DNA of 34,470 bases from contig NIVC01000091.1 of the NCBI GenBank assembly GCA_002269645.1, positions 1 through 34,470 on the forward strand, read 5' to 3'. A program made the position numbers and the translations under genes. This document shows, piece after piece, positions 8,665-34,470 of the stretch. Each line of letters begins with the position of its first letter. The first letter of the stretch is position 1. The DNA comes from Macrostomum lignano. Taxonomy: Eukaryota. The notes below the pieces were generated by a model that was not told the DNA's origin, searched no databases, and saw nothing but the letters and a program-made list of their open reading frames with translations.

Positions 8665-8715
8665 GTGAGTGTCTGTATGCCTGTTCCATCTAAAGATTGT
8701 AAGCCAGTCTTAACT

Positions 8716-9281: not shown

Positions 9282-9361
9282 CAGATTACATGATTAATCT
9301 AACTGTAACCAGTGTTTACAACAATTCCCAGCTAAAAAATCCCCTTAACAACTGACCGCAG

Positions 9362-9919: not shown

Positions 9920-9939
9920 GTGAGTGCTGCTGTTTAGAG

Positions 9940-10265
9940 CGTTCATAGCTAGCGAGAGGCATTGCTGCCCCCATTCCGCCGACTCCCCTGAGCAGGCACA
10001 CAAGCGCGGGGATACGTACGCAGTCATACGCACAGGCACACACTCACACAGGAGTGTACAGCGGCCCTAACTTTATTTATCGTTAGGCATGTACACTTCA
10101 CTGTGCCTTGGGGGTTGGCCCTCAAGCTGAGCGTTAATTGCACGAGCAGAGCCAAGCCGAGATTCCAATTTAGCCCCAAATTAATGTGACTGCACTTGGA
10201 ATCGAGCCTGGGCCGCTGGCACATCGGAGCGCCTAGCTAGACCACTGGGCTACGCACAGCCGGCC
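9940..10265 (-). mobile_element. tRNA-derived SINE (second family), antisense in the kelch intron
   Basis: The reverse strand has an A-box TAGCCCAGTGG (10252-10242) and a B-box GGCTCGATTCC (10208-10198). A body fragment recurs inverted at 12647-12676. The 3' limit is uncertain. Confidence 0.6.
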
Positions 10266-10936
10266 TTCCTTAGATAGTCATTCAGTTAGTGTCAATTTAC
10301 GAGTACAAGAGGTGGATAAATTGAAAGAAGCATTTTTTTATTAGAAAGTAACAAACAGATTAATAATAATGGAATCCAAGTATGATTATTCAATTTTTTT
10401 AAATAATACAATGCATAGCATATGCTTTTTGATAGCCTGGCTGATAGAGATGTGAAAGAAACACCATTTTCACTTTTCAAGTCAAATGGTCACCTATGTG
10501 TGTGTCTATGTGTGTGTCCTGAATCCTTGATTGGATCCTTAATCGAAAAATTCACTTCTTAAGCTTTGTCTCTAACTCTCAACAAAGAAGAATCTTAATT
10601 TAGAAAAGATTTAAAGCGAATAAATATTCTAAAAACAGGGAATTCATTTGTTGTTAATCTGTTATTGGCACAGCAATTTCAAAGCTTTAATTATAGTTAT
10701 TAAAATTAACGAGGATTTGAGTCTTTTCTACTGAGGAAATTAGTTTTTTTCGCTTTTGACACTGATGCCACTGTGAGATCAAGGGATGCCTATTTAGGTA
10801 AATTTCAATTGAAATTTTATAAGCTTCTTTTCGCAGCCATGATTCTGTCTGCCTTTGTTTTATAGTCAGCGGATTTAACAAAAAATAGCTGCTTTTAAAC
10901 GCTGTTTGTGGTCATATAAATAATTTTAAGGGTTGA

Positions 10937-12078
10937 ATAGTGGCACTCTGCTGCAGTTCACATCATTTGTGATAGTGGCACTCTGGTGCAGTTCACATCA
11001 TGTGTGATAGTGGCACTCTGGTGCAGTTCACATCATGTGTGATAGTGGCACTCTGCTGCAGTTCACATCATTTGTGATAGTGGCACTCTGGTGCAGTTCA
11101 CATCATGTGTGATAGTGGCACTCTGCTGCAGTTCACATCATGTGTGATAGTGGCACTCTGCTGCAGTTCACATCATTTGTGATAGTGGCACTCTGGTGCA
11201 GTTCACATCATGTGTGATAGTGGCACTCTGGTGCAGTTCACATCATGTGTGATAGTGGCACTCTGGTGCAGTTCACATCATGTGTGATAGTGGCACTCTG
11301 GTGCAGTTCACATCATGTGTGATAGTGGCACTCTGCTGCAGTTCACATCATGTGTGATAGTGGCACTCTGCTGCAGTTCACATCATGTGTGATAGTGGCA
11401 CTCTGGTGCAGTTCACATCATGTGTGATAGTGGCACTCTGGTGCAGTTCACATCATTTGTGATAGTGGCACTCTAGTGCAGTTCACATCATGTGTGATAG
11501 TGGCACTCTGGTGCAGTTCACATTATGTGTGATAGTGGCACTCTGGTGCAGTTCACATCATGTGTGATAGTGGCACTCTGGTGCAGTTCACATCATGTGT
11601 GATAGTGGCACTCTGGTGCAGTTCACATCATTTGTGATAGTGGCACTCTGGTGCAGTTCACATCATGTGTGATAGTGGCACTCTGGTGCAGTTCACATCA
11701 TGTGTGATAGTGGCACTCTGGTGCAGTTCACATCATGTGTGATAGTGGCACTCTGGTGCAGTTCACATCATGTGTGATAGTGGCACTCTGGTGCAGTTCA
11801 CATCATTTGTGATAGTGGCACTCTGGTGCAGTTCACATCATGTGTGATAGTGGCACTCTGGTGCAGTTCACATCATGTGTGATAGTGGCACTCTGGTGCA
11901 GTTCACATCATGTGTGATAGTGGCACTCTGGTGCAGTTCACATCATTTGTGATAGTGGCACTCTGGTGCAGTTCACATCATGTGTGATAGTGGCACTCTG
12001 GTGCAGTTCACATCATGTGTGATAGTGGCACTCTGGTGCAGTTCACATCATGTGTGATAGTGGCACTCTCACATCATT
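10937..12078. repeat. 35-bp intronic minisatellite (GATAGTGGCACTCTGGTGCAGTTCACATCATGTGT), ~32 copies
   Basis: Highly homogeneous tandem units inside the kelch intron 9920-12728. Confidence 0.97.
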
Positions 12079-12395
12079 TCAAATTCTGCTAATAGCAGAA
12101 ATTCAATTTGCATAAGAAAAACTGATCTGATTTGTATTCTGATTCGGATAGGTAATATAATTATTAAATAAAAAACTGGGAGAGTCAAGAATATACACTT
12201 CACTGTTGCACTTTTCTATATTATTGATTCTGCATGATGATTCTAATGCACTTTGTGCCTAGCCTGATGGGACTTCTTTTAAATTTAATACTATATATTT
12301 TACCGAATATATTTAATTATACGTTATAATATGATATAGAATAGATTGAATTGTTTGGATTTGCTTTAAAGTGGCAGACATATAATTTACAACTT

Positions 12396-12474
12396 TCGGT
12401 CGAGAATCGAACCACCGACCTTCAAGTCGTGACTCCGACGCTCTGACCACTAGGCTACAACCCCTCCGGTGATA
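12396..12474 (-). mobile_element. tRNA-like SINE head
   Basis: Reverse strand GTTGTAGCCTAGTGGTCAGAGCGTCGGAGTCACGACTTGAAGGTCGGTGGTTCGATTCTC has clear A and B boxes. T and acceptor stems pair poorly. Confidence 0.65.
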
Positions 12475-12523
12475 TTGAGGAATGCTCTGTTATAAAGAGC
12501 AGCGTTTTCTATTTATTTATAGA

Positions 12524-12640
12524 TGCATTGCTTCAGTTCACCCAGCTGTAAAATGGGTGCCAGCATTAACTGGGGTAATTGAGGCTGTGTGTGTGGCGAC
12601 CCCCCCCAGTCCTTGGACTGAACAGCAATATAATAATAAT
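12524..12640 (+). mobile_element. 5'-truncated copy of the 7785-8100 SINE core
   Basis: About 100 bp at ~90% identity to 7899-7997, followed by a (TAA)n tail. Confidence 0.75.
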
Positions 12641-12728
12641 GTGCAACCAACCCCCAAGACACAGAGTGTACATGCCCGACATGCTTTGTTGCGCCAGGTT
12701 GTAAACAAAATCTTTTATACCCTGCCAG

Positions 12729-13309
12729 GTCACATGCTAATATTTGGCGGCGAAACTCGAGACCAACGGACCACAGACCAGCTGTGGTCATTGCGACTGA
12801 CCTCGGAGACTTGGACTCCGGTACGATCTGTACAGCAGCAGCGCCAGCAACGGCCAAGAGGCACGGTGCATCACAGTCTGCTGTCATTATTTCCGCACTA
12901 TACTAAGCCATCTATTCAACAAGTTAATAGTCGGTCTAACAACGAAGGTCGCGAGTTCGAATCTTCTCATTATAATCGTCATCAATGTTCCGGAGCGGAA
13001 ATTGAATTGGCAACAATTAGGCAGCCGGGTGGAGGACCAGTTGATGCGGCAGCGACTTCGGCAGCTGACCCCGTCTCGTGGGCGTTCGCTAATCCGTCTC
13101 TGTCCGTTTCGTCGAGCTGCGGTTCTACGGTTGGCGGCGCTTCTGCGGCTTCCATCGGCGCTGACGATAATGAACTCGACGCTGAACCCGCTGCTGTTGA
13201 TGGCAGCGGCGGCGAGTTTGGCGCCTCGGTGCTGTGCCTTGGCGCCCAGGAGACCGGATTCAAACGTAGCCCGTTAGCTATCTGGCGAGGTTGTTTCAGT
13301 TTAACCTGA
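12729..13309 (+). CDS. Kelch-repeat protein, terminal exon C
   Basis: Acceptor TTTTATACCCTGCCAG/12729. The phase-1 join gives FHSACIVQ-G-HMLIFGGETRDQRTTDQLWSLRLTSETW, one intact kelch blade across the intron. Stop TGA at 13309, AATAAA near 13425. Confidence 0.88.
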
Positions 13310-13482
13310 AATTGTTGATCTGGGTGTTTTTTTTTAAAATACAAGTATATAAGATTCAAAAAGATTGTCAGTTAAATATTATAAATTGCTGATCAATTGA
13401 TCCATAAATTAATCAATCTTGCTCAATAAATTAAGGCAAAGTATTAACTGTGGGAGGCTTTCTTAGAATGCACGTGGTCGTG

Positions 13483-14287
13483 TCATGCTAAAAATCGATG
13501 GGGTCATGCTAAAAAAAGATGGAATCATGCTAAGAATAGATGGAATCATGCTAAGAATCGATGAGGTCACGCTAAAGAATAGATGGGGTCATGCTAAGAA
13601 TAGATGGGGTCATGCTAAGAATAGATGGGGTCATGCTAAGAATCGATGGGGTCATGCTAAGAATAGATGGGGTCATGCTAAGAATCAATGGGGTCATTTT
13701 AAGAATCAATGGGATCATGCTAAGAATCGATGAGGTCATGCTTAGAATCGATGAGGTCATGCTAAGAATCGATTAGGTCATGCTAAGAATAGATGGGGTC
13801 ATGCTAAGAATCGATGGGGTCATGCTAAGAATCAATGGGGTCATTTTAAGAATCAATGGGATCATGCTAAGAATCGATGAGGTCATGCTTAGAATCGATG
13901 AGGTCATGCTAAGAATCGATTAGGTCATGCTAAGAATAGATGGGGTCATGCTAAGAATCGATGGGGTCATGCTAAGAATCAATGGGGTCATTTTAAGAAT
14001 CAATGGGATCATGCTAAGAATCGATGAGGTCATGCTTAGAATCGATGAGGTCATGCTAAGAATCGATTAGGTCATGCTAAGAATAGATGGGGTCATGCTA
14101 AGAATGGATGGGATCATGCTAAGAATAGATGGGGTCATGCTAAGAATGGATGGGGTCATGCTAAGAATCGATTAGGTCATGCTAAGAATCGATTAGGTCA
14201 TGCTAAGAATCGATGGGTTCATGCTAAAAATCGATGAGGTCATGTAAAAAATTGGTGAGATCATGTCAAGAATCGATGGTGTCATGT
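13483..14287. repeat. 21-bp minisatellite (CATGCTAAGAATCGATGGGGT) with a 147-bp (7-unit) higher-order repeat
   Basis: The diagnostic variant CATTTTAAGAATCAATGGGAT occurs at 13695, 13842 and 13989. Confidence 0.95.
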
Positions 14288-16042: not shown

Positions 16043-16459
16043 ATGGCAACTCGTTGGGGCTCCCTGCGACCGCACAAGACGGTGCCTTTTATCAAGTATT
16101 TTCGTAATCGCCTATCGGAGAATGACCAACAGATATCTCGGGACAAGCTGCGAAAATTCAATTTAAAACCAATTTCCGGCTTTCGATTCGAATACGACCC
16201 GTTTAATCCGCAGTCGGCTTCTTTAAGAAAACTGTGCAGCGTATTGCACACGCCGCGATGGCGAGCCAGCAATCTGGAGTGTCCCTGTCAGGTTGTCATT
16301 CGGGGCGATCGATCAGAGCCGACCCTTCTCGTCTCGTATTTCGACGGCCAGTCGCTGTTAGTTAAGACAGGCAATTTCAGTCTGGCAGATTTGGTGGAGT
16401 TAATTCAACGCCAGACTGATCTGCACGTGACCGATGCTGCTTCGCCTGCTTCTAGTTGA
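16043..16459 (+). CDS. MRPL53: 39S mitochondrial ribosomal protein L53 (mL53), single coding exon
   Basis: NLKPISGFRFEYDPFNPQSASLR...ASNLECPCQVVIRGDRSEPTLLVSY...LVKTGNFSLADLVELI matches the mL53 pattern (NLKxV..I.F.FDPF...S.R...TN..C......DRS.P). Start context GCATGG. Confidence 0.85.
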   Translation: MATRWGSLRPHKTVPFIKYFRNRLSENDQQISRDKLRKFNLKPISGFRFEYDPFNPQSASLRKLCSVLHTPRWRASNLECPCQVVIRGDRSEPTLLVSYFDGQSLLVKTGNFSLADLVELIQRQTDLHVTDAASPASS

Positions 16460-17126: not shown

Positions 17127-18080
17127 ATGGCTCGTCGTTCAGACTGTTTTATAGGCACGATTCTGTGCCTCAACATCCTGGTATCCGTAGCCATTGTTGG
17201 CGTTAACAAATACGTCTATACGCATTACGGCTTTCCCAATTTGACTCTAACAATGATACACTTTGTTGTCACTTTTCTTGGCCTGCTAATCTGCAGATTG
17301 TTTGGCATTTTCCGCCCGAAAAATCTCCCGGTGCTTCGTATGCTGCCTCTGTCCCTCACCTTCTGCGGCTTTGTCGCCTTGACAAATCTTAGTCTGCAAT
17401 TCAACACTGTGGGCACCTATCAGGTGTTAAAGACTTTAACTACGCCCTGCATTATGACTATTAATGCCGTAGCTTATGGCAAACCATCATCCTGGCGTCT
17501 GCGTCTCACTTTTTTACCGGTTGTTGTTGGTGTTGCTTTGAATTCGCACTACGATTTAAAATTTAGCCCAATAGGTATGGCATTTGCCGCGGCTGGCGTG
17601 CTTGTGACGTCGCTTTACCAAATCTGGGTTGGCACTTTCCAGTCTAATTTGCAGTGCGACTCTGCTCAGCTGCTGTTCTATCAGGCGCCTTTGTCTGCTC
17701 TGCTTCTACTGCCACCGATTGCTTATTTTGAGCCACCATCGAGTGTCAGTTTGACTCTGAGCAGTCAGGCTGTCGGCATGGTTGGCCTGTCGGCTGGCAT
17801 CGCCTTCCTTGTTAATTTGTCCATCTATTGGATCATTGGCAATACGTCAGCTCTAACCTATAATATGGCCGGACATCTGAAATTCTGTTCGGCTCTCACT
17901 TTGGGCTACCTGATATTTAACGATCCAATATCGTTAGAACAAGTCATGGCTATACTACTAGTCTGCTTAGGTGTGTTCGCTTACTCTTGGGTTAAACTAC
18001 GAGAGGACATCGTTGCTAAGGCGGCTACCCAGCTGCCCACGACAGCATTGGGTCAGCAGTCAGTGAAGTCTGCTGCTTGA
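17127..18080 (+). CDS. SLC35E3: Solute carrier family 35 member E3 (nucleotide-sugar/TPT-family transporter), single coding exon
   Basis: 317 aa with ~10 hydrophobic segments. Motifs NKYVY...GFPNLTLTMIHF, FCGFVALTNLSLQFNTVGTYQVLK, QLLFYQAPLSA, LVNLSIYWIIGNTSALTYNMAGHLKF. Confidence 0.95.
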   Translation: MARRSDCFIGTILCLNILVSVAIVGVNKYVYTHYGFPNLTLTMIHFVVTFLGLLICRLFGIFRPKNLPVLRMLPLSLTFCGFVALTNLSLQFNTVGTYQVLKTLTTPCIMTINAVAYGKPSSWRLRLTFLPVVVGVALNSHYDLKFSPIGMAFAAAGVLVTSLYQIWVGTFQSNLQCDSAQLLFYQAPLSALLLLPPIAYFEPPSSVSLTLSSQAVGMVGLSAGIAFLVNLSIYWIIGNTSALTYNMAGHLKFCSALTLGYLIFNDPISLEQVMAILLVCLGVFAYSWVKLREDIVAKAATQLPTTALGQQSVKSAA

Positions 18081-18948: not shown

Positions 18949-19014
18949 CTTTTCAAAAGATCGTGAGTTCGTGTTATGCTTAGTCTTAAACTAAATCAAT
19001 ACCTGGATTCTTAC

Positions 19015-19073
19015 TTAATGGAATTTTCGAAATGGCAATAGACTTTCTCTTCCAATTCATCATAAAGAATGTT
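19015..19073 (-). CDS. Small secreted protein, coding exon 3
   Basis: Acceptor TTCTTTACAACCAG, NILYDELEEKVYCHFENSI, donor AA/GTAAGA. Phase 0 in, phase 2 out. Confidence 0.72.
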
Positions 19074-19098
19074 CTGGTTGTAAAGAAGTTACTTTTTG

Positions 19099-19965
19099 AA
19101 ACGGATTCCGTCAGACAGCCACTTCTTGGCACGGATTCCATGCGACAGCCACTTCTTGGCACGGATTCCATGCGACAGCCACTTCTTGGCACGGATTCCA
19201 TGCGACAGCCACTTCTTGGAACGGATTCCATGCGACAGCCACTTCTTGGCACGGATTCCATGCGACAGCCACTTCTTGGCACGGATTCCATGCGACAGCC
19301 ACTTCTTGGAACGGATTCCATGCGACAGCCACTTCTTGGCACGGATTCCATGCGACAGCCACTTCTTGGAACGGATTCCGTCAGACAGCCACTTCTTGGC
19401 ACGGATTCCATGCAACAGCCACTTCTTGGCACGGATTCCATGCGACAGCCACTTCTTGGAACGGATTCCATGCGACAGCCACTTCTTGGAACGGATTCCA
19501 TGCGACAGCCACTTCTTGGCACGGATTCCATGCGACAGCCACTTCTTGGAACGGATTCCGTCAGACAGCCACTTCTTGGCACGGATTCCATGCAACAGCC
19601 ACTTCTTGGAACGGATTCCATGCGACAGCCACTTCTTGGAACGGATTCCATGCGACAGCCACTTCTTGGCACGGATTCCATGCGACAGCCACTTCTTGGA
19701 ACGGATTCCGTCAGACAGCCACTTCTTGGCACGGATTCCATGCAACAGCCACTTCTTGGCACGGATTCCATGCGACAGCCACTTCTTGGCACGGATTCCG
19801 TCAGACAGCCACTTCTTGGCACGGATTCCATGCAACAGCCACTTCTTGGCACGGATTCCGTCAGACAGCCACTTCTTGGCACGGATTCCGTCAGACAGCC
19901 ACTTCTTGGCACGGATTCCGTCAGACAGCCACTTCTTGGCACGGATTCCGTCAGACAGCCACTTC
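19099..19965. repeat. 30-bp intronic minisatellite (ACGGATTCCATGCGACAGCCACTTCTTGGC), ~29 copies
   Basis: Occupies almost all of the 903-nt intron 19976-19074. Explains the five long track ORFs at 18986-20010. Confidence 0.97.
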
Positions 19966-19976
19966 GACTCGCTTAC

Positions 19977-20035
19977 AATTCCCAACTCGTCCATTGAATC
20001 TGTGACATAGTGAGCCTCAGACTCAAGCCCCAGTG
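19977..20035 (-). CDS. Small secreted protein, coding exon 2
   Basis: Acceptor CTAACTCATTTCAG, (A)LGLESEAHYVTDSMDELGI, donor ATT/GTAAGC. Phase 1 in, phase 0 out. Confidence 0.72.
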
Positions 20036-20173: not shown

Positions 20174-20722
20174 ATTGCTTTTGGGCAAGATTTATAATGA
20201 TCTCGCTATCCTAAAGATGATGATTTGCGGTCTTTTTATGTCGATAATACTTATTGGGGAAATTCTACAGCATTGAATGGTGACAAAATGTATAATTTTA
20301 CTCTTACTTCGTCTCAAATCGTCTGTTGCCAGATTCTGCAAAGCTCAAGCTGCATTATTGTACGCTGTCTAAATATATTTTTTTCAGTTGATTCTGCCAC
20401 AGTTATTAACTATAAGCCGTTTCATTGGGTCTCTCGCTCTACCTTAAAAGAGTGTTTCTCGTTCTATCATTGGCCAATCAGAATTCTCCAGACACTTTAG
20501 GTTTGCAGCTCCTAAATTCTGACTACATTTAGATACTCGTATGTGTCAGTTATTGATTTTAGTCGATCGTATACAATCGTATAAATCATTAGTTATACGA
20601 GTACCGTAAACTGGTAACTTCGGTACATGTATCTAGTAGGATTCTGTAATTCTGTTGAAACGGCTTATTGATACGCACTGCATCGCTATTCAAAAACATT
20701 TTAGTGTGTTTACCTGTCGCTT

Positions 20723-22079
20723 AGTCAATTGAAATGGCACTCAGTCAAATTGAAATGGCATTCAGTCAAATGAAATGGCACTCAGTCAATTAAAGTGGCA
20801 CTCAGTCAATTGAAATGACACTCAGTCAATTAAAATGGCACTCAGTCAAATTGAAATGGCACCCAATCAAATAAAATGGCACTCAGTCAAATGAAGTGGC
20901 ACTCAGTCAAATGAAATGGCATTCAGTCAAATGAAATGGCACTCAGTCAAATTGAAATGGCATTCAGTCAAATGAAGTGGCACTCAGTCAAATTGAAATG
21001 GCACTCAGTCAAATGAAATGACACTCAGTCAATTGAAGTGGCACTCAGTCAAATGAAATGGCACTCAGTCAAATGAAATGACACTCAGTCAATTGAAGTG
21101 GCACTCAGTCAAATGAAATGGCACTCAGTCAAATGAAATGACACTCAGTCAATTGAAGTGGCATTCAGTCAAATGAAATGGCACTCAGTCAAATGAAGTG
21201 GCACTCAGTCAAATGAAATGGCACTCAGTCAAATGAAATGGCACTCAGTCAAATGAAATGACACTCAGTCAATTGAAGTGGCACTCAGTCAAATGAAATG
21301 GCACTCAGTCAAATGAAATGGCATTCAGTCAAATGAAATGGCACTCAGTCAAATGAAATGACACTCAGTCAATTGAAGTGGCACTCAGTCAAATGAAATG
21401 GCACTCAGTCAAATTGAGTGGCACTCAGTCAAAAAAATGGCATTCAGTCAAATAAAATGGCATTCGGTCAAATAAAATGGCACTCAGTCAAACAAAATGG
21501 CACTCAGTCAAATGAAATGGCACTCAGTCAAATGAAATGACACTCAGTCAATTGAAGTGGCACTCAGTCAAATGAAATGGCACTCAGTCAAATAAAATGG
21601 CATTCAGTCAAATTGAGTGGCACTCAGTCAAACAAAATGGCACTCAGTCAAATGAAATGACACTCAGTCAAATAAAATGGCACTCAGTCAATTGAAGTGG
21701 CACTCAGTCAAATGAAATGGCACTCAGTCAAATGAAATGGCCCTCAGTCAAATAAAATGGCACTCAGTCAATTGAAGTGGCACTCAGTCAAATGAAATGG
21801 CATTCAGTCAAACAAAATGGCACTCAGTCAAATTGAAATGGCACTCAGTCAAATTGAGTGGCATTCAGTCAAACAAAATGGCACTCAGTCAAATAAAATG
21901 GCACTCAGTCAATTGAAATGGCACTCAGTCAAATTGAGTGGCACTCAGTCAAACAAAATGGCACTCAGTCAAATAAAATGGCACTCAGTCAATTGAAATG
22001 GCACTCAGTCAAATGAAATGGCACTCAGTCAATTGAAATGGCACTCAGTCAATTGAAGTGGCACTCAGTCAAATGAAAT
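20723..22079. repeat. 20-bp minisatellite (GAAATGGCACTCAGTCAAAT), ~67 copies
   Basis: Seen directly. Confidence 0.97.
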
Positions 22080-22125
22080 GTACCGGGGACTGATATATAT
22101 ATATACAATAATTTCTATTTTGCAG

Positions 22126-22713
22126 GTAATGCCATGTGCAACAAGTTCTTTTACAAAGGACGCTAAAACACCTCAACTTCAAAACACCTCAACAAGCTTC
22201 AACGATCTTCTCAAAGGAAGAATGCGAGATACGTGTGGATATCTAGCTCGTTGCAAGTAGCTAATTTGTTTTATCACCCCATCAACCATGCATGCCAGTA
22301 AGACATGAAAGTTCTGGAAAAATTTCACAAAACTTAAACAATATTTCGGTCGTATTACTTAGGCTCTTCCGCCTGTCAACAATATTCCATGTTATAATTC
22401 TATTGAATAAAACTTTCGTTGCATTCAGAGGTGGGAAGCACTGTTGTCTGAAATAGAATTAGGTGACAGTGACATCTTGTAAGCACGCAGATGGGTGGTT
22501 GAGCTCGTGTCGAAGTGCTCAAGCTACTTCTCTATATCGCGATATCCCCCCCTAGCTCATTCAGGCCTGACTCAAGAGGGCTTCAATCGATCTTACCTGC
22601 ATGGACTCCGAACAGGTGAATATTGTGTACGAGCGTAGCTCCCCAATGCATAGCTAATCTATTTATAATGCATTCATACACGCAGTTTCACATGCTCATA
22701 TAACTGTTCGTGA
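22126..22713 (+). other. Possible small spliced transcript (three short GT-AG introns)
   Basis: Candidate introns 22298-22428, 22479-22564 and 22616-22685 give a phase-consistent 44-aa ORF from ATG 22292. There is also a strong acceptor at 22125. No homology recognised. Confidence 0.25.
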
Positions 22714-22834
22714 ATGGGTCAACTTATGATTAATCAGTGATAATCGGTCTCAGATCGTGAATTGGTCAACACAATCAGTGATGATTGGTACGTGTGTACA
22801 TGAGTAAATTCCTACATGTAAATTATTTCCGAAT

Positions 22835-23135
22835 CAGTGTTGTCGAAGTGCCTGTTGCCCCCCCCCGCGTGCTCATTTTTGCGCCGCAGGCACTCATTTT
22901 TGCGCCGCAGGCACTCATTTTAGCGCCGCAGGCACTCAGTTTAGCGCCGCAGGCACTCATTTTAGCGCCGCAGGCACTCATTTTAGCGCCGCAGGCACTC
23001 ATTTTTGCGCCGCAGGCACTCATTTTAGCGCCGCAGGCACTCATTTTAGCGCCGCAGGCACTCATTTTTGCGCCGCAGGCACTCATTTTAGCGCCGCAGG
23101 CACTCATGTTGGTCCCCCCGGTGGCGACGCCCCTG
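22835..23135. mobile_element. MITE-like insert carrying a 21-bp array (GCGCCGCAGGCACTCATTTTA, ~11 copies)
   Basis: The right end GGTGGCGACGCCCCTG is an imperfect inverse of the left CAGTGTTGTCG. The insert separates 41-bp satellite units at 22732-22790 from the main array. The array is certain; the element identity is not. Confidence 0.4.
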
Positions 23136-24995
23136 TAATCAGTGATAATTGGTCTCAGATCGTGAATTGGTCAACTTAATCAGTGATAATTGGTCTCAGA
23201 TCGGGAATTGGTCAACTTAATCAGTGATAATTGGTCTCAGATCGGGAATTGGTCAACTTAATCAGTGATAATTGGTCTCAGATCGGGAATTGGTCAACTT
23301 AATCAGTGATAATTGGTCTCAGATCGGGAATTGGTCAACTTAATCAGTGATAATTGGTCTCAGATCGGGAATTGGTCAACTTAATCAGTGATAATCGGTC
23401 TCAGATCGGGAATTGGTCAACTTAATCAGTGATAATTGGTCTCAGATCGGGAATTGGTCAACTTAATCAGTGATAATTGGTCTCAGATCGTGAATTGGTC
23501 AACTTAATCAGTGATAATTGGTCTCAGATCGGGAATTGGTCAACTTAATCAGTGATAATTGGTCTCAGATCGGGAATTGGTCAACTTAATCAGTGATAAT
23601 TGGTCTCAGATCGGGAATTGGTCAACTTAATCAGTGATAATTGGTCTCAGATCGGGAATTGGTCAACTTAATCAGTGATAATTGGTCTCAGATCGGGAAT
23701 TGGTCAACTTAATCAGTGATAATCGGTCTCAGATCGTGAATTGGTCAACTTAATCAGTGATAATTGGTCTCAGATCGGGAATTGGTCAACTTAATCAGTG
23801 ATAATTGGTCTCAGATCGTGAATTGGTCAACTTAATCAGTGATAATTGGTCTCAGATCGGGAATTGGTCAACTTAATCAGTGATAATTGGTCTCAGATCG
23901 TGAATTGGTCAACTTAATCAGTGATAATTGGTCTCAGATCGTGAATTGGTCAACTTAATCAGTGATAATTGGTCTCAGATCGGGAATTGGTCAACTTAAT
24001 CAGTGATAATTGGTCTCAGATCGGGAATTGGTCAACTTAATCAGTGATAATCGGTCTCAGATCGGGAATTGGTCAACTTAATCAGTGATAATTGGTCTCA
24101 GATCGGGAATTGGTCAACTTAATCAGTGATAATTGGTCTCAGATCGGGAATTGGTCAACTTAATCAGTGATAATTGGTCTCAGATCGTGAATTGGTCTAC
24201 TTAATCAGTGATAATTGGTCTCAGATCGGGAATTGGTCAACTTAATCAGTGATAATTGGTCTCAGATCGGGAATTGGTCAACTTAATCAGTGATAATTGG
24301 TCTCAGATCGGGAATTGGTCAACTTAATCAGTGATAATTGGTCTCAGATCGGGAATTGGTCAACTTAATCAGTGATAATTGGTCTCAGATCGGGAATTGG
24401 TCAACTTAATCAGTGATAATTGGTCTCAGATCGGGAATTGGTCAACTTAATCAGTGATAATTGGTCTCAGATCGGGAATTGGTCAACTTAATCAGTGATA
24501 ATTGGTCTCAGATCGGGAATTGGTCAACTTAATCAGTGATAATTGGTCTCAGATCGGGAATTGGTCAACTTAATCAGTGATAATTGGTCTCAGATCGTGA
24601 ATTGGTCTACTTAATCAGTGATAATTGGTCTCAGATCGGGAATTGGTCAACTTAATCAGTGATAATTGGTCTCAGATCGGGAATTGGTCAACTTAATCAG
24701 TGATAATTGGTCTCAGATCGGGAATTGGTCAACTTAATCAGTGATAATTGGTCTCAGATCGGGAATTGGTCAACTTAATCAGTGATAATTGGTCTCAGAT
24801 CGGGAATTGGTCAACTTAATCAGTGATAATTGGTCTCAGATCGGGAATTGGTCAACTTAATCAGTGATAATTGGTCTCAGATCGGGAATTGGTCAACTTA
24901 ATCAGTGATAATTGGTCTCAGATCGGGAATTGGTCAACTTAATCAGTGATAATTGGTCTCAGATCGGGAATTGGTCAACTTAATCAGTGATAATT
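23136..24995. repeat. 41-bp minisatellite (AATCAGTGATAATTGGTCTCAGATCGGGAATTGGTCAACTT), ~45 copies
   Basis: Very homogeneous. The TCTACTT variant recurs 410 bp (10 units) apart near 24198 and 24608. Confidence 0.97.
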
Positions 24996-25676
24996 GTTTG
25001 CACACCGTAAATGTTCAATCCTTAAGGAATTGCTCCGAGCTAAATAAAAATTAGAGACAACGTATAGTAGCTTGATAGATAAAATTTGGTATAATTTTTA
25101 TATGATTCTAGCTCTAAGTTTTATTGATGGAAACAAGAATCTAACAAATGTAATGCATTTTTAAGCATATTGATCACATACTCGTACAATACGCAAAAGT
25201 GCACAGCAAAACTGCAGTTTGTGGTTAATGGCTGCATGCGATTATGAAAAAAAACAAAAAAAATAGTATTGTAAAATGTTTATTAGTTTAAGTACGAGCT
25301 ACTACGGTTAATCATTTAGACATGCTAAATTTTGTCAGTTAAAAGAATTGTAAAATAGTAAATTTTAGGAGCAAAGACAGCAGGGTGTCTCAAATATTTT
25401 CTTTATTTATATATAGCTAGGAAATTAATTGATTTTGATTTTTTTTAATTGGAAGAAAAGATTTTAGAAATCGATGAATGCTGCGTTACTCCAAAAATTT
25501 ACTATTGACCAAAAATACAAATTTCAAACGTAAATAATAAGCAGCTATTGTGGTATAATATAAATAGTAATAACAATCATAATAACAGTGTAAAATTGTA
25601 GCAAAATAAATATATTCCAATCCTTGAAATTAGCTCGTCACATTATAACGAATTGTCAAGTAATCGGTAGTGCTGC

Positions 25677-25718
25677 TCAGTGCTTTTTTTGGCTTAGGAA
25701 TGCCTCGACACTGGGGTA
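25677..25718 (-). CDS. Giant repeat protein, probable terminal coding exon
   Basis: Acceptor TTTCCATTGCAG/25718, phase 0 matching the donor at 26216, reading YPSVEAFLSQKKH*. An AT-rich 3'UTR-like stretch follows. Confidence 0.6.
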   Translation of the reverse strand, partial: YPSVEAFLSQKKH

Positions 25719-25786
25719 CTGCAATGGAAATATTGTTTGGCATCGTTATTTACACCAATAAGATCAGTCTCGCCAAAATCACGATC

Positions 25787-26140
25787 CATGTCTCACCAAG
25801 CCAATCCATGTCTCACCAAGTCAGTCCATGTCTCACCAAGCCAATCCATGTCTCACCAGGCCAATCCATGTCTCACCAAGCCAATCCATGTCTCACCCAG
25901 GCCAATCCATGTCTCACCAAGCCAATCCATGTCTCACCCAGCCAATCCATGTCTCACCAAGCCAATCCATGTCTCACCCAGGCCAATCCATGTCTCACCA
26001 AGCCAATCCATGTCTCACCCAGCCAATCCATGTCTCACCAAGCCAATCCATGTCTCACCAAGACAATCCATGTCTCACCAAGCCAATCCATGTCTCACCC
26101 AGCCAATCCAGGTCTCACCAAGCCAATCCATGTCTCACCA
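25787..26140. repeat. ~20-bp intronic minisatellite (CCAAGCCAATCCATGTCTCA), ~18 copies
   Basis: Lies in intron 26216-25719. Explains ORFs 25670-26258. Confidence 0.95.
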
Positions 26141-26216
26141 AGTATTACACTCCTCGCTTACCAACAGAAATACGTATAGAAAAGCATTTAAAAGATCAAA
26201 AGCTCGAGAAGCTCAC

Positions 26217-26955
26217 CTGACCCGTCCTTGTATGCCGCCCGATTGTCATGCGCGCTGACTGCGGAGTCACCACGCCGCTGCCGCCGTACATCGACTGTTG
26301 AGCAGTCGCAGCTGACGTTGGCAGAGACTGAGGCTGCTGCTGATAGTAATGCATGTGGTGCTGCTGCAACGACGGCGGCTCGTAACTGCCGGTTCCAAAA
26401 CCGCTTGGTCGGGGTCTCAGGTGAATCGAAGGCGACAGTAGTTGGCCGCCACCGGTTGGCGTTGGCGGACTCAGTAGGTTGATGGAGTGATGCTGATGTT
26501 GCGACTGCAAGTGCTGCGAATGATGAAGTGAGCCGTGATGGGGAAACATCGACATCATCTGGTCCTCAGCTAGATCGTCTCCGGCTACAGAGGAGGCCAA
26601 GGAAGGCGGCTGCGACGGCACGTAACGTTCGACGTTCGACTGCGAGATGACAACGCTGCCGCGGTCCCCGAGCAGCACCGAGCCGTCCTCAGCTTCGAAA
26701 CGCCACTGGCCGCTGAGGCGCAGCTCCTGATGCTGCTGGTCATCAGTCGATAACGTCTGGACGCTGGCATCCGCAACGCGTCTGAGCTGGCGAATCACCT
26801 GGGTGAAGCTATCCGCCCCGATCACCTTGACCATCGTGCGAACGTCGAATTCAAAATTGCCCTCTTGCAGGCGAAGCATGCGCCAAACGTTTGAATTGTA
26901 CTTTAAGTCCGTCTGCACAGCCACCTCAGCGCGGTTTTTGCTCAGATTGTCCAAC
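26217..26955 (-). CDS. Giant repeat protein, penultimate exon (unique and H/Q/P-rich low-complexity region)
   Basis: GC-rich 246-codon open frame. Acceptor CTAACAAAG/26955 (phase 2), donor CAG/GTGAGC at 26216 (phase 0). No family recognised. Confidence 0.8.
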
Positions 26956-27692
26956 CTTTGTTAGATTGCAGATAGTAATTAAGTATTTAATTCACAGCTA
27001 CAGCTAGTCTAACCCAGACCAATTAGGTTTTGGGTCTCTTCTCAGCTCTCTTCTCTCATCTCTCATCTCCTCTTTCCTCTTCTCTCTCCTTTATTCCAGC
27101 TCGCTTAATAAACATTTATAAGAATGAAGGAATGAACGAACATCAAATATTTAATAAAGCAGTCGATGAACATTTTGGTTATTTTCAGGGCAGCTTGTAG
27201 AGATTTTTAGATTGACAGCCAGTTATATTTGTATTCGAGAGCAACACGCCTTTGTCCTGGCCTCTAAAGTGTTCAGTGGGCTCAAGACGGCGGGAATCAA
27301 TAATCATAAACTAGTCCAGAGGGTTGCTGTTACAACATGAATAAGACGTGAGCAGGTGTTCTTGGATGGCTGACCGTGTAGTGTACAAGTCTCGCTTGGT
27401 TTCCCCTATGTAGGGCATACTCTGGTCCCGATAGAGCGCTGAAACTTATAAACGATCACTTCAGTAATTGGTCGAGGAACTGTCTGTCTATCTAAACATC
27501 TCCGCAAGCTGCCCCTGAAGCTGACCAAAATGCTCGAAATGCATTTGCATAATGTTTTGTGTAAATAATATTTGACGTTTGTTCTTTCTTTCGTCATAGG
27601 ATGATCCGTCACCAGATTTTTCTAAATATGGACAGTTTTTGAAGTTTATTAAAAAAGCGCTTGAGTGTAACAAACAGCAATCAGACCCAAAC

Positions 27693-30600
27693 CTGAATCC
27701 GGAGATTTTTCCAATATTTAAACGATCCGAGATGGCTAGCAGGTCGGCCTCCGATTCAGTGTCAGTCTGGAACTCCGATTCTGTCATGGCATCCTCAGCG
27801 TGCTGCCCAGCACGCGGTAGCAGGTCCGGCGCAACGAGTCCCTCGGCTCCGGTCTCCGAAATCGAAATCGACGCCAGCGAAGGGCGACTAAAATTTGAGG
27901 CCGCTGGACGCCGAGAGACAGTCGTTGAGTCCGCCGAATCTGCCGACATCAGGCCGGAAAAAGTGAACGAGGCGCCGCGACTGATCTCCTCAGACTGCTC
28001 AGCTTGAGGCGAAGACGTCTCAAAAAATGTGCCACTTTCCACAGCTTTAGACACGCTGATTTGAGTGCCGCGGCTAAACAAACGCTTCACACCTTCAGCT
28101 CCAGAGTCTGTGACAAACGGACGAGACGGTTGCCCTGATCCATCAACGAAGGAAGCACTACTAGCAGTGCACGGAGTGCTGAATTGCACAACACTCTCGC
28201 CATCATTTCTTTCTCGGAAGCAACCGCTAGCTACAGCAAAATTCTCTAAGCACACTTTGACACAGGACTGATCCAGACTAAACTCCTTACAACAGCCGCT
28301 AACAGCTAGACGAGATTCCTCCTTGAATCGAACTATACTCTCCGAGGAAACAAGTTCACGGAAGCAACCATCAGAAACTACTGTCTTACTGTCCACATCC
28401 AAGAAAGACCGCATCTCGCTTTCAACGAAAACTTTTTCCCTAAAGAAACCACTGCCAGTGACAAGGGCCTCATCTTTAAACTGAACTCTACTCACGCTCA
28501 GGTGTGACTCTTTGTAGCAGCAAGTCGAACTGATTGCAACAGTTTGATCGTGATGCACCTGGCTTTGTAAAAACGCGGTCTCTCTGAAGCAACCGCTTCC
28601 GGTCACGGTGATCTCCTCCTTGAACTGCACTCTGCTCTCGTTGTAGCTCGTCTCTCTGAAGCAACCGCTTCCGGTCACGGCGATCTCCTCCTTGAACTGC
28701 ACTCTGCTTTCATTGAGACTCATCTCTCTGAAGCAACCGCTTCCGGTCACGGCGATCTCCTCCTTGAATCGCACTCTGCTCTCGTTGTAGCTCGTCTCTC
28801 TGAAGCAACCGCTTCCGGTCACGGCGATCTCCTCCTTGAATCGCACTCTGCTCTCGTTGTAGCTCGTCTCTCTGAAGCAACCGCTTCCGGTCACGGCGAT
28901 CTCCTCCTTGAACTGCACTCTGCTTTCATTGAGACTCATCTCTCTGAAGCAACCGCTTCCGGTCACGGCGATCTCCTCCTTGAACTGCACTCTGCTTTCA
29001 TTGAGACTCATTTCTCTGAAGCAACCGCTTCCGGTCACGGCGATCTCCTCCTTGAATCGCACTCTGCTCTCGTTGTAGCTCGTCTCTCTGAAGCAACCGC
29101 TTCCGGTCACGGCGATCTCCTCCTTGAATCGCACTCTGCTCTCGTTGTAGCTCGTCTCTCTGAAGCAACCGCTTCCGGTCACGGCGATCTCCTCCTTGAA
29201 CTGCACTCTGCTTTCATTGAGACTCATTTCTCTGAAGCAACCGCTTCCGGTCACGGCGATCTCCTCCTTGAATCGCACTCTGCTCTCGTTGTAGCTCGTC
29301 TCTCTGAAGCAACCGCTTCCGGTCACGGCGATCTCCTCCTTGAATCGCACTCTGCTCTCGTTGTAGCTCGTCTCTCTGAAGCAACCGCTTCCGGTCACGG
29401 CGATCTCCTCCTTGAACTGCACTCTGCTTTCATTGAGCTCGTCTCTCTGAAGCAACCGCTTCCGGTCACGGCGATCTCCTCCTTGAATCGCACTCTGCTC
29501 TCGTTGTAGCTCGTCTCTCTGAAGCAACCGCTTCCGGTCACGGCGATCTCCTCCTTGAATCGCACTCTGCTCTCGTTGTAGCTCGTCTCTCTGAAGCAAC
29601 CGCTTCCGGTCACGGCGATCTCCTCCTTGAATCGCACTCTGCTCTCGTTGTAGCTCGTCTCTCTGAAGCAACCGCTTCCGGTCACGGCGATCTCCTCCTT
29701 GAATCGCACTCTGCTCTCGTTGTAGCTCGTCTCTCTGAAGCAACCGCTTCCGTCACGGCGATCTCCTCCTTGAACTGCACTCTGCTCTCGTTGAGACTCA
29801 TTTCTCTGAAGCAACCGCTTCCGGTCACGGCGATCTCCTCCTTGAATCGCACTCTGCTCTCGTTGTAGCTCGTCTCTCTGAAGCAACCGCTTCCGGTCAC
29901 GGCGATCTCCTCCTTGAATCGCACTCTGCTCTCGTTGTAGCTCGTCTCTCTGAAGCAACCTTCCGGTCACGGCGATCTCCTCCTTGCACTGCACTCTGCT
30001 CTCGTTGTAGCTCGTCTCTCTGAAGCAACCGCTTCCGGTCACGGCGATCTCCTCCTTGAACTGCACTCTGCTTTCATTGAGACTCATTTCTCTGAAGCAA
30101 CCGCTTCCGGTCACGGCGATCTCCTCCTTGAATCGCACTCTGCTCTCGTTGTAGCTCGTCTCTCTGAAGCAACCGCTTCCGGTCACGGCGATCTCCTCCT
30201 TGAATCGCACTCTGCTCTCGTTGTAGCTCGTCTCTCTGAAGCAACCGCTTCCGGTCACGGCGATCTCCTCCTTGAACTGCACTCTGCTTTCATTGAGCTC
30301 ATTTCTCTGAAGCAACCGCTTCCGGTCACGGCGATCTCCTCCTTGAATCGCACTCTGCTCTCGTTGTAGCTCGTCTCTCTGAAGCAACCGCTTCCGGTCA
30401 CGGCGATCTCCTCCTTGAATCGCACTCTGCTCTCGTTGTAGCTCGTCTCTCTGAAGCAACCGCTTCCGGTCACGGCGATCTCTCCTTGAACTGCATCTGC
30501 TCTCGTTGTAGCTCGTCTCTCTGAAGCAACCGCTTCCGGTCACGGCGATCTCCTCCTTGAACTGCACTCTGCTTCATTGAGCTCATTCTCTGAAGCAACC

Positions 30601-33600
30601 GCTTCCGGTCACGGCGATCTCCTCCTTGAATCGCACTCTGCTCTCGTTGTAGCTCGTCTCTCTGAAGCAACCGCTTCCGGTCACGGCGATCTCCTCCTTG
30701 ATCGCACTCTGCTCTCGTTGTAGCTCGTCTCTCTGAAGCAACCGCTTCCGGTCACGGCGATCTCCTCCTTGAATCGCACTCTGCTCTCGTTGTAGCTCGT
30801 CTCTCTGAAGCAACCGCTTCCGGTCACGGCGATCTCCTCCTTGAAATGCACTCTGCTTTCATTGAGACTCATCTCTCTGAAGCAACCGCTTCCGGTCACG
30901 GCGATCTCCTCCTTGAATCGCACTCTGCTCTCGTTGTAGCTCGTCTCTCTAAGCAACCGCTTCCGGTCACGGCGATCTCCTCCTTGAACTGCACTCTGCT
31001 TTCATTGAGACTCATCTCTCTGAAGCAACCGCTTCCGGTCACGGCGATCTCCTCCTTGAATCGCACTCTGCTCTCGTTGTAGCTCGTCTCTCTGAAGCAA
31101 CCGCTTCCGGTCACGGCGATCTCCTCCTTGAATCGCACTCTGCTCTCGTTGTAGCTCGTCTCTCTGAAGCAACCGCTTCCGGTCACGGCGATCTCCTCCT
31201 TGAATCGCACTCTGCTCTCGTTGTAGCTCGTCTCTCTGAAGCAACCGCTTCCGGTCACGGCGATCTCCTCCTTGAACTGCACTCTGCTTTCATTGAGACT
31301 CATTTCTCTGAAGCAACCGCTTCCGGTCACGGCGATCTCCTCCTTGAATCGCACTCTGCTCTCGTTGTAGCTCGTCTCTCTGAAGCAACCGCTTCCGGTC
31401 ACGGCGATCTCCTCCTTGAACTGCACTCTGCTTTCATTGAGACTCATTTCTCTGAAGCAACCGCTTCCGGTCACGGCGATCTCCTCCTTGAATCGCACTC
31501 TGCTCTCGTTGTAGCTCGTCTCTCTGAAGCAACCGCTTCCGGTCACGGCGATCTCCTCCTTGAATCGCACTCTGCTCTCGTTGTAGCTCGTCTCTCTGAA
31601 GCAACCGCTTCCGGTCACGGCGATCTCTCCTTGCACTGCATCTGCTCTCGTTGTAGCTCGTCTCTCTGAAGCAACCGCTTCCGGTCACGGCGATCTCCTC
31701 CTTGAACTGCACTCTGCTTCTTGTACTCGTTTCTCTGAAGCAACCGCTTCCGGTCACGGCGATCTCCTCCTTGAATCGCACTCTGCTCTCGTTGTAGCTC
31801 GTCTCTCTGAAGCAACCGCTTCCGGTCACGGCGATCTCCTCCTTGAATCGCACTCTGCTCTCGTTGTAGCTCGTCTCTCTGAAGCAACCGCTTCCGGTCA
31901 CGGCGATCTCCTCCTTGAATCGCACTCTGCTCTCGTTGTAGCTCGTCTCTCTGAAGCAACCGCTTCCGGTCACGGCGATCTCCTCCTTGAATCGCACTCT
32001 GCTCTCGTTGTAGCTCGTCTCTCTGAAGCAACCGCTTCCGGTCACGGCGATCTCCTCCTTGAATCGCACTCTGCTCTCGTTGTAGCTCGTCTCTCTGAAG
32101 CAACCGCTTCCGTCACGGCGATCTCCTCCTTGAACTGCACTCTGCTCTCGTTGAGCTCGTTCTCTGAAGCAACCGCTTCCGGTCACGGCGATCTCCTCCT
32201 TGAATCGCACTCTGCTCTCGTTGTAGCTCGTCTCTCTGAAGCAACCGCTTCCGGTCACGGCGATCTCCTCCTTGAACTGCACTCTGCTCTCGTTGTAGCT
32301 CGTCTCTCTGAAGCAACCGCTTCCGGTCACGGCGATCTCCTCCTTGAACTGCACTCTGCTTCGTTGAGACTCATCTCTGAAGCAACCGCTTCCGGTCACG
32401 GCGGCGATCTCCTCCTTGAATCGCACTCTGCTCTCGTTGTAGCTCGTCTCTCTGAAGCAACCGCTTCCGGTCACGGCGATCTCCTCCTTGAACTGCACTC
32501 TGCTTTCATTGAGACTCATCTCTCTGAAGCAACCGCTTCCGGTCACGGCGATCTCCTCCTTGAATCGCACTCTGCTCTCGTTGTAGCTCGTCTCTCTGAA
32601 GCAACCGCTTCCGGTCACGGCGATCTCCTCCTTGAATCGCACTCTGCTCTCGTTGTAGCTCGTCTCTCTGAAGCAACCGCTTCCGGTCACGGCGATCTCC
32701 TCCTTGAATCGCACTCTGCTCTCGTTGTAGCTCGTCTCTCTGAAGCAACCGCTTCCGGTCACGGCGATCTCCTCCTTGAATCGCACTCTGCTCTCGTTGT
32801 AGCTCGTCTCTCTGAAGCAACCGCTTCCGGTCACGGCGATCTCCTCCTTGAACTGCACTCTGCTCTCGTTGTAGCTCGTCTCTCTGAAGCAACCGCTTCC
32901 GGTCACGGCGATCTCCTCCTTGAATCGCACTCTGCTCTCGTTGAGACTCATTTCTCTGAAGCAACCGCTTCCGGTCACGGCGATCTCCTCCTTGAATCGC
33001 ACTCTGCTCTCGTTGTAGCTCGTCTCTCTGAAGCAACCGCTTCCGTCACGGCGATCTCCTCCTTGAACTGCACTCTGCTTTCATTGAGACTCATCTTCTC
33101 TGAAGCAACCGCTTCCGGTCACGGCGATCTCCTCCTTGAATCGCACTCTGCTCTCGTTGTAGCTCGTCTCTCTGAAGCAACCGCTTCCGGTCACGGCGAT
33201 CTCCTCCTTGAATTGCACTCTGCTCTCGTTGTAGCTCGTCTCTCTGAAGCAACCGCTTCCGGTCACGGCGATCTCCTCCTTGAATCGCACTCTGCTCTCG
33301 TTGTAGCTCGTCTCTCTGAAGCAGCCGCTTGCGGTCACGGCGATCTCCTCCTTGAAATGCACTCTGCTTTCATTGAGACTCATCTCTCTGAAGCAACCGC
33401 TTCCGGTCACGGCGATCTCCTCCTTGAATCGCACTCTGCTCTCGTTGTAGCTCGTCTCTCTAAAGCAACCGCTTCCGGTCACGGCGATCTCCTCCTTGAA
33501 CTGCACTCTGCTTTCATTGAGACTCATCTCTCTGAAGCAACCGCTTCCGGTCACGGCGATCTCCTCCTTGAATCGCACTCTGCTCTCGTTGTAGCTCGTC

Positions 33601-34470
33601 TCTCTGAAGCAACCGCTTCCGGTCACGGCGATCTCCTCCTTGAATCGCACTCTGCTCTCGTTGTAGCTCGTCTCTCTGAAGCAACCGCTTCCGGTCACGG
33701 CGATCTCCTCCTTGAATCGCACTCTGCTCTCGTTGTAGCTCGTCTCTCTGAAAGCAACCGCTTCCGGTCACGGCGATCTCCTCCTTGAACTGCACTCTGC
33801 TTTCATTGAGACTCATTTCTCTGAAGCAACCGCTTCCGGTCACGGCGATCTCCTCCTTGACTGCACTCTGCTTTCATTGAGACTCATTTCTCTGAAGCAA
33901 CCGCTTCCGGTCACGGCGATCTCCTCCTTGAATCGCACTCTGCTCTCGTTGTAGCTCGTCTCTCTGAAGCAACCGCTTCCGGTCACGGCGATCTCCTCCT
34001 TGAATCGCACTCTGCTCTCGTTGTAGCTCGTCTCTCTGAAGCAACCGCTTCCGGTCACGGCGATCTCCTCCTTGCACTGCACTCTGCTCTCGTTGTAGCT
34101 CGTTTCTGAAGCAACCGCTTCCGGTCACGGCGATCTCCTCCTTGAACTGCACTCTGCTTTCATTGATACTCATTTCTCTGAAGCAACCGCTTCCGGTCAC
34201 GGCGATCTCCTCCTTGAATCGCACTCTGCTCTCGTTGTAGCTCGTCTCTCTGAAGCAACCGCTTCCGGTCACGGCGATCTCCTCCTTGAATCGCACTCTG
34301 CTCTCGTTGTAGCTCGTCTCTCTGAAGCAACCGCTTCCGGTCACGGCGATCTCCTCCTTGAATCGCACTCTGCTCTCGTTGTAGCTCGTCTCTCTGAAGC
34401 AACCGCTTCCGGTCACGGCGATCTCCTCCTTGAATCGCACTCTGCTCTCGTTGTAGCTCGTCTCTCTGAA
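27693..34470 (-). CDS. Giant repeat protein, large repeat-containing exon (5' end outside window; apparent frameshifts above ~29436)
   Basis: One frame runs from the 24-aa repeats through diverged repeats and a Ser-rich unique region to candidate donor AG/GTTTGG at 27692, phase 2, matching the next exon. The donor is weak. Repeated 1-2-nt indels occur above ~29436. Confidence 0.7.
28579..34470 (-). repeat. 72-bp coding tandem repeat, ~82 copies, unit ESRV(R/Q)FKEEIAVTGSGCFRE(TSY/MSL)N
   Basis: Exact 72-bp period with two interspersed unit variants. About 6 diverged units continue at 28150-28578. The array runs off the window end. Confidence 0.97.

Follow-up and report, generated by a model that had tools for sequence, protein, structure and literature searches.

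What does the 72-bp tandem array that closes contig NIVC01000091.1 of the flatworm Macrostomum lignano (assembly GCA_002269645.1) encode? The window analyzed here is the whole of this contig (34,470 bp), and over the array its minus strand translates into 24-residue units carrying an RVxF-type sequence, the docking motif of protein phosphatase 1 (PP1). An earlier note on this DNA had described a giant protein with more than 80 copies of the motif, perhaps a multivalent PP1 scaffold or sink, and had named as its fallback a structural, beta-rich, Cys-containing repeat with an incidental match. Our analysis points toward the fallback. With a rough probability of 0.6, the array is the coding central repeat region of a very large, uncharacterized M. 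lignano plakin-domain cytolinker, in which the repeat would serve as a structural rod or spacer and the RVxF match would be incidental.

Among the more than 12 tandem arrays found in the window by Tandem Repeats Finder (TRF), the 72-bp array is by far the strongest (28578-34470, 82.2 copies, 93% matches, 2% insertions/deletions (indels), score 10289). The contig stops within it, so that the array is cut off at the contig end. The minus-strand unit has the consensus TGSGCFRE(TSY/MSL)NESRV(R/Q)FKEEIAV and occurs as variant A (TGSGCFRETSYNESRVRFKEEIAV) and as a main second form, variant B (...REMSLNESRVQFKEE...); its predicted tryptic peptides are ETSYNESR and EEIAVTGSGCFR, with EMSLNESR from variant B. 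TRF and unit parsing thus bear out the tandem 24-residue unit that had been described, with its TSY to MSL variant and its change from R to Q at the x position. The motif is less pervasive than the one copy in every unit that had been claimed, given that 76 intact SRV[RQH]F sequences were counted (50 RVRF, 24 RVQF and 2 RVHF). At the DNA level, 39 of the 82 units are identical. The array is one 24-residue unit amplified very recently rather than 80 independent motifs.

Downstream on the minus strand, the array runs into diverged units, a unique tail and two further coding exons, laid out as follows.

28578..34470, minus strand: 72-bp tandem array of 82 units (TRF, unit-by-unit parsing, motif and frame counts, coding-frame test)
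28137..28577, minus strand: six diverged repeat units (translation, alignment A1)
27693..28136, minus strand: unique Ser/Thr/Ala- and acid-rich tail of the repeat exon, with the donor CAG/GTTTGG (GT at 27692-27691) (sequence; the continuation matches P0001 and P0002)
26217..26955, minus strand: next coding exon, with acceptor ..caaag/G and donor CAG/GTGAGC (sequence, frame, identity to P0001)
25784..26142, no strand assigned: 20-bp minisatellite in the last intron, outside the protein (TRF, exon coordinates)
25677..25718, minus strand: last coding exon, YPSVEAFLSQKKH, and the stop codon (peptide located; start of the annotated 983-residue gene)

The diverged units (GCFRETAFLQSQVHHDQTVAISST, CCYKESHLSVSRVQFKDEALVTGS, GFFREKVF..., GCFRELVSSESIVRFKEESRLAVS, GCCKEFSLDQSCVKVCLENFAVAS and GCFRERNDGESVVQFSTPCTASSA) are in frame with the last 12 clean units and include the RVQFKDE, IVRFKEE and VVQF forms, which the earlier note had also read correctly. 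The best protein matches to the array end and the 3' exons are the M. lignano gene models P0001 (A0A1I8HLM2) and P0002, and all three window exons are in frame and identical to P0001; exact look-ups of P0001 and P0002 gave no contig on record for either. In the public record, a 983-residue minus-strand gene is annotated from 25677 upward, its start coinciding with the last coding exon. The exon at 26217-26955 contains a conserved segment, QTDLKYNSNVWRMLRLQEGNFEFDV..., followed by a Gln/His/Pro-rich region. This segment is shared with the paralogue P0005 (BLASTP E=2e-8); a Pfam scan of the exon returned no family, and AlphaFold2 (AF2) modeled the conserved domain at low confidence, with a mean predicted local distance difference test (pLDDT) score of 43.7. 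The segment is thus an uncharacterized C-terminal domain.

The relatives of the repeat point to a plakin-type gene. When 1.8 billion representative proteins were scanned with the region of the diverged units, strong matches were confined to M. lignano. One of them, P0003 (PAA91320.1, BOX15_Mlig024865g2), lies on a sister contig, NIVC01000090.1, and has a unique N-terminal part of 1,150 residues that leads in frame into the same A and B units. This N-terminus matches Pfam SH3_10 (42.8 bits against a cut-off of 22.8) and aligns to plakin-domain crystal structures of desmoplakin (3R6N, E=4e-11) and plectin (3PE0, E=1.7e-10). The array at the sister locus (L001) holds about 195 units across 14 kb (20187-34197), with about 45 frame changes, and is followed at 34198-34441 by a unique in-frame linker, FCFELDFISANVV...DEYVQ, closing at a GTGAAG splice donor. 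Because the array on the sister contig reads into a linker that closes at a splice donor, the plakin-like gene seems to have two array-bearing exons. A search aimed at the rest of the sister contig with the linker peptide gave no match. P0030, a 4,429-residue entry in UniRef/MetaClust, joins a plakin N-terminus, 44 units, the same linker and further units, and reads 20 and 17 units without a break. Its annotation is chimeric, with a retrotransposon-like start (reverse transcriptase/RNase H-like by eye) and tiny introns that hop over frameshifts of the array. The copy number of the first array therefore differs between assemblies or copies (44 versus about 195). The order of A and B units also differs among P0030, L001 and the window, which indicates that the three represent different copies or different parts.

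A paralogue group (P0006, P0031 and P0005) repeats this architecture, with a plakin N-terminus, diverged units of 24-25 residues, an amplified 49-residue double unit and a C-terminal segment homologous to window exon 2; P0035, P0036 and P0037 form a second group that shares it. From the shared repeat and this paralogue architecture, we infer that the plakin-domain gene on the sister contig, or else an allele or duplicate of that gene, has its 3' part in the window, where its second array would be cut short by the contig end. Pfam scans of the C-terminal exons of the window and of P0003, P0005 and P0006 found no plakin-repeat, CH, GAR or EF-hand domains, the stretch between the linker and the window array lying outside these scans. 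The Pfam scans did not bear out the automatic UniProt names of the fragments ('FHA domain-containing', 'HTH La-type', 'Fibronectin type-III'), which were set aside. Literature searches for Macrostomum with plakin, and for the locus tag, returned nothing relevant. Outside the flatworm, a sponge protein (P0004, Ephydatia muelleri Em0004g1215a) has repeats of about 50 residues with ...DPVTGSGRYRHSSMSLQQSTLEGEEVE..., resembling VTGSGCFREMSLNESRVQFKEE, at an E-value of 1.7e-18 that is inflated by repetition; this likeness to the repeat unit is probably a chance resemblance.

On the evidence of the sequence, the frame that contains RVxF is the coding frame of the array, since it shows an excess of synonymous variation and continues in frame into its flanks. 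The variation was measured in 210 clean units pooled from the window and the sister locus, using single-base variants present in at least three units (n=24). Of these recurrent variants, 12 are synonymous in the RVxF frame and 3-6 in other frames. One antisense frame with the same third positions also reaches 12/24, yet it meets a stop in variant A; of the six frames, only the RVxF frame is rich in silent variation and at the same time open in the two variants, A and B. An antisense coding strand was rejected, given that an open antisense frame has just 5/24 synonymous variants and that the splice sites and gene models lie on the minus strand. Furthermore, the RVxF frame runs into unique coding sequence on either side of the first array (5' and 3') and on the 3' side of the window array. 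The array thus has the marks of a coding minisatellite, with a period of 72 bp divisible by three, one open frame, coding-type variation and in-frame junctions; frame breaks remain in the interior of the assembled array.

The RVxF sequence was compared with the docking consensus, with chance and with the rest of the unit. The RVRF and RVQF of the A and B units fit the loose consensus [RK]x0-1[VI]{P}[FW] and are followed by acidic K-E-E, so that the earlier observation of a fit stands, with 76 intact copies, for a consensus of low specificity. This original consensus of Wakula is reported to occur at random in about 25% of proteins, and because of that frequency a stricter consensus, [KR][KR][ACHKMNQRSTV]V[CHKNQRST][FW], has been used for screens (PMC4794898). 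In our own counts, shuffling the unit at constant composition produced the loose motif in 7-9% of trials, and 24-mers of average composition had it by chance in about 3%. None of the 21 distinct units matches the high-specificity consensus, because E-S rather than basic residues precede R-V.

Conservation was examined in 19 non-amplified units from both array flanks and a paralogue (alignment A1), so that the relatives compared are paralogues within M. lignano. In these units, G is kept in 16, C in 14, F of G-C-F in 12 (with Y in three more), E in 17, S in 14, V of RVxF in 12 (with A in five more), F of RVxF in 12 and the final S in 15. The R of RVxF, its basic anchor, is kept in 2 and is among the most variable columns. 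The loose motif as a whole is matched by 2 of the 19 diverged or paralogous units, and at the equivalent place the units amplified in paralogues read SSAKF or SVTCDW, SVRYKEE also being found there. What is conserved jointly is the framework G-C-[FY]-x-E ... S-x-[VA]-x-F ... S. Conservation of V and F had been set out beforehand as a test of docking. Both residues are indeed conserved among these paralogues, but as part of the framework of the whole unit and without the R, which is the pattern of a structural repeat rather than of a short docking motif. The RVxF match therefore looks like an incidental property of the amplified unit, and this joint conservation favors the earlier note's fallback over its scaffold.

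Structure modeling and weak profile matches lean toward a beta-rich repeat. In single-sequence mode, AF2 folds perfect units into a beta-solenoid with one coil per 24 residues, three to four strands and pLDDT above 90, and RVRF forms a beta-strand in this model. AF2 is known to over-predict such solenoid folds for arbitrary perfect repeats (PMC11795689). The weak profile matches of the repeat are to beta-solenoid or beta-repeat families (LRR_5, bactofilin, pentapeptide and NHL). Membership of LRR_5 itself was rejected as below threshold and unspecific, bactofilin, pentapeptide, NHL and Laminin_G being equally weak. The repeat unit is probably beta-rich and structural. Under the favored reading, an older degenerate repeat family of the form G-C-[FY]-x-E ... 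S-x-[VA]-x-F ... S would have supplied one 24-residue unit, and unequal recombination would very recently have amplified it, giving arrays in which near-identical copies number from tens to hundreds. The unit would most likely form beta-strands, with V-x-F as an inward-facing hydrophobic pair, and the array would separate the N-terminal plakin domain from the C-terminal domain as an extended rod or spacer. More tentatively, the G-C-F-x-E...S-x-V-x-F unit could be an undescribed type of beta-solenoid repeat that builds the rod of a flatworm-specific plakin subfamily, a possibility to which we give clearly less credence than to the favored reading as a whole, but more than to multivalent PP1 docking.

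Several observations weigh against this reading. The pLDDT of AF2 falls below 50 for natural diverged units. A Foldseek search of the repeat model against the PDB returned only generic beta-helices (TibA, Ag43, pentapeptide) at TM-scores of at most 0.34. The Pfam LRR_5 match of three perfect and six diverged units stays sub-threshold (24.8 bits against a gathering value of 27.7, E=2e-5), and LRR_5 had no match in the scan of P0003 and of the paralogues P0005 and P0006. About 37% of the residues of the unit are charged, and it could be disordered. In both the third paralogue and the N-terminal flank, GxFxE-type motifs are spaced irregularly, from 24 to 80 residues apart, which fits poorly with a compact solenoid. 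The link between the window and the plakin N-terminus consists of shared repeat sequence and paralogue architecture, not of contiguous sequence. Finally, both contigs have many frame breaks, and continuity of the open reading frame (ORF) through the array interior is a prediction.

Much of this evidence is shared with the alternative that survives best, in which the repeats form a disordered region, either a flexible charged spacer or entropic spring or a multivalent display of another motif, SGCF[RK]E, for a partner such as a cytoskeletal filament. The irregular spacing concerns SG[CV][FY][RK]E-type motifs within a Ser/Thr/Gln-rich N-terminal flank and the third paralogue, and the sharp drop of AF2 confidence on diverged units, a hand-made Uversky-type estimate that puts the unit at the border of order and disorder, and the lack of any Pfam family over threshold for the repeat all agree with disorder. 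However, eight positions across the 24-25-residue unit are conserved at a fixed period in the window gene and a paralogue. Such conservation counts against a single short motif because a motif of this kind would leave the remaining residues free to vary. The i, i+2 hydrophobic alternation (V-x-F, I-x-V) is typical of strands, and the weak HMMER matches are all to folded beta-repeat families. Disorder is thus a serious rival to the structural repeat, if a distinctly less probable one.

The second alternative arises from the state of the assembly. Aligned to a perfect array, the window array shows 28 indel events (24 deletions and 4 insertions), the motif moves from one minus-strand frame to another 15 times, using all three, and two in-frame stops fall in a single unit. 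No open stretch exceeds 754 residues (29752..27491); this longest one has 13 motifs and takes in the 12 clean units at the end of the array together with the diverged units and the unique tail. As assembled, the window array is not one continuous ORF; the giant protein proposed in the earlier note stays plausible, but the window alone does not supply its reading frame. The array interior might accordingly be untranslated through real frameshifts, as in a decaying pseudogene (this copy being a haplotig or a duplicate, the line being partly polyploid) or in a runaway minisatellite whose origin happened to lie in a coding exon. Such an origin could account for the frame changes in both arrays. 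Ten other minisatellites on the contig have 0% indels, and the public gene models are all partial or skip frameshifts. Additionally, the M. lignano genome contains 15% simple and tandem repeats and large duplications (PMC5730564).

The distribution of the indels argues otherwise. Sixteen of the 28 fall in positions that differ between A and B (23 of 72; binomial P=0.005), and seven units with two to three separate 1-2-bp deletions each are A/B chimeras amid otherwise identical units, a pattern unlike independent mutation. The 12 window units that adjoin the unique flank are free of indels, and the flank-adjoining units at the sister locus are also clean. The Mlig_3_7 assembly was built from PacBio continuous long reads (CLR) with Canu and polished with short reads by Pilon (PMC5730564). 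Given this clustering at variable positions, the multiply hit chimeric units, the clean flanks and the CLR assembly, we infer that the indels are mostly long-read consensus errors rather than real mutations. Shorter arrays on the same contig mostly have no indels according to TRF; they measure at most 1.9 kb and can be spanned by single PacBio reads, whereas this array is at least 5.9 kb long, and arrays too long for reads to span may well be prone to consensus errors. The excess of synonymous variation in a single one of the open frames, together with the unbroken runs of P0030, which stems from another assembly or copy, further counts against an untranslated interior, and we regard it as rather unlikely.

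Weakest of all is the multivalent PP1 scaffold or sink, in which exposed units on a cytoskeletal linker would each dock one PP1 catalytic subunit through RV[RQ]F: although the 76 loose matches with their acidic followers, a charged and polar unit compatible with an exposed, extended conformation and the untrustworthiness of the AF2 solenoid for perfect repeats speak for it, it is very improbable in view of the chance frequency of the loose consensus, the failure of all 21 units on the strict one, the retention of the basic anchor, and likewise of the loose motif, in just 2 of the 19 diverged units, the other sequences amplified in paralogues, a conservation that extends beyond the motif to G-C-F-x-E and the flanking Ser, and the origin of the copy number in a single amplification rather than in selection for many motifs. 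If it were true, with the array fully translated and RV[RQ]F exposed, the protein would bind as many as hundreds of PP1 catalytic subunits, whether as a docking platform or as a sink, in a striking, lineage-specific concentration of phosphatase activity at cytoskeletal attachment sites.

The remainder of the window contains three other recognizable genes.

8337-13309, plus strand: exons of a Kelch-repeat (beta-propeller) gene, a propeller of KLHDC2/LZTR1 type (Pfam Kelch_1)
16043-16459, plus strand: homologue of mitochondrial ribosomal protein L53 (Pfam MRP_L53; annotated in the public record)
17127-18080, plus strand: single-exon gene of the triose-phosphate/nucleotide-sugar transporter family (Pfam TPT; annotated in the public record)

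Unrelated minisatellites crowd the window between 383 and 26142; TRF gives them periods of 18-41 bp, with lengths reaching 1.9 kb and copy numbers reaching 79 (for example 383-2180, 10937-12069, 13482-14286, 19101-19965, 20723-22080 and 23136-24996), most of them between or inside genes; 24-bp and 35-bp minisatellites lie in apparent introns of the Kelch-repeat gene. The 30-bp array at 19101-19965 yields mechanical ORFs of 300-320 residues (18986-20010), with at least four frames open over both strands; these ORFs are probably a non-coding minisatellite artefact. A second contig, NIVC01003752.1 (L003), carries an identical copy of the neighboring transporter gene and ends about 8.9 kb beyond it. 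The window array begins about 10.5 kb beyond the transporter gene, and NIVC01003752.1 stops short of the expected array position. This arrangement fits a duplication or haplotigs, and also assembly breakage in the region.

These findings describe an apparently Macrostomum-restricted plakin-domain subfamily with a middle region of 24-25-residue repeats that belong to no described family, and in one of its members the repeat has grown to hundreds of near-identical copies. Their relevance is modest and concerns the evolution of repeat proteins and the cell biology of flatworms, in particular adhesion organs and the attachment of epidermis and muscle. They also carry two cautions: the amplification of one unit makes a chance match to a short motif seem overwhelming, and early long-read assemblies corrupt long coding arrays, leaving fragmented or chimeric gene models.

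Among known systems, the closest parallel is with the plakins (desmoplakin, plectin and epiplakin, and spectraplakins such as Shot and VAB-10). P0003 likewise has an SH3 domain embedded in spectrin repeats, and the gene product is similarly very large, without an obvious signal peptide and with a long repetitive middle or C-terminal region. Unlike the repeats of plakins, the repeat here is a 24-residue G-C-F-x-E...S-x-V-x-F unit without a Pfam family and, among the 1.8 billion representative proteins scanned, has M. lignano paralogues only. The BspA-type or TpLRR leucine-rich repeats (LRR_5, PF13306) have a similar period of 23-25 residues. Alignment to the LRR_5 protein P0007 gives 33-36% identity across four units in the register V-T-G-S-G-C-F...S-N-x-x-V-x-[FI], retaining G-x-G-C-F, S, N, V-x-[FI] and I/V, with E-values that repetition inflates. 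In this pairwise alignment, V-x-F of the repeat unit falls on V-x-I of the leucine-rich unit, which is its core beta-strand. In contrast to LRR_5 (L..V.I..V..IG..AF..C..), three core hydrophobic positions are polar here (E, T, T). Typical carriers of LRR_5 are surface proteins, whereas this repeat sits in a cytoplasmic metazoan plakin-like protein.

With the RVxF interactors of PP1, the amplified unit shares R-V-[RQ]-F followed by K-E-E. Such interactors have a single motif or a handful, placed in disordered regions and shared by their relatives, whereas here the basic anchor is not conserved, the strict consensus is missed and the residues appear to form part of the framework of the repeat. 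Coding minisatellites are known as exons with a variable number of tandem repeats, for example in mucins and involucrin. The array resembles them in its period, a multiple of three, its near-identical DNA units in two interspersed variants, its degenerate edge units and a copy number that varies between assemblies or copies. It differs from arrays of the mucin or involucrin type in belonging to a cytoplasmic plakin-like protein rather than to a secreted Ser/Thr/Pro-rich glycoprotein, and in the conserved hydrophobic pattern of its unit, which suggests structure.

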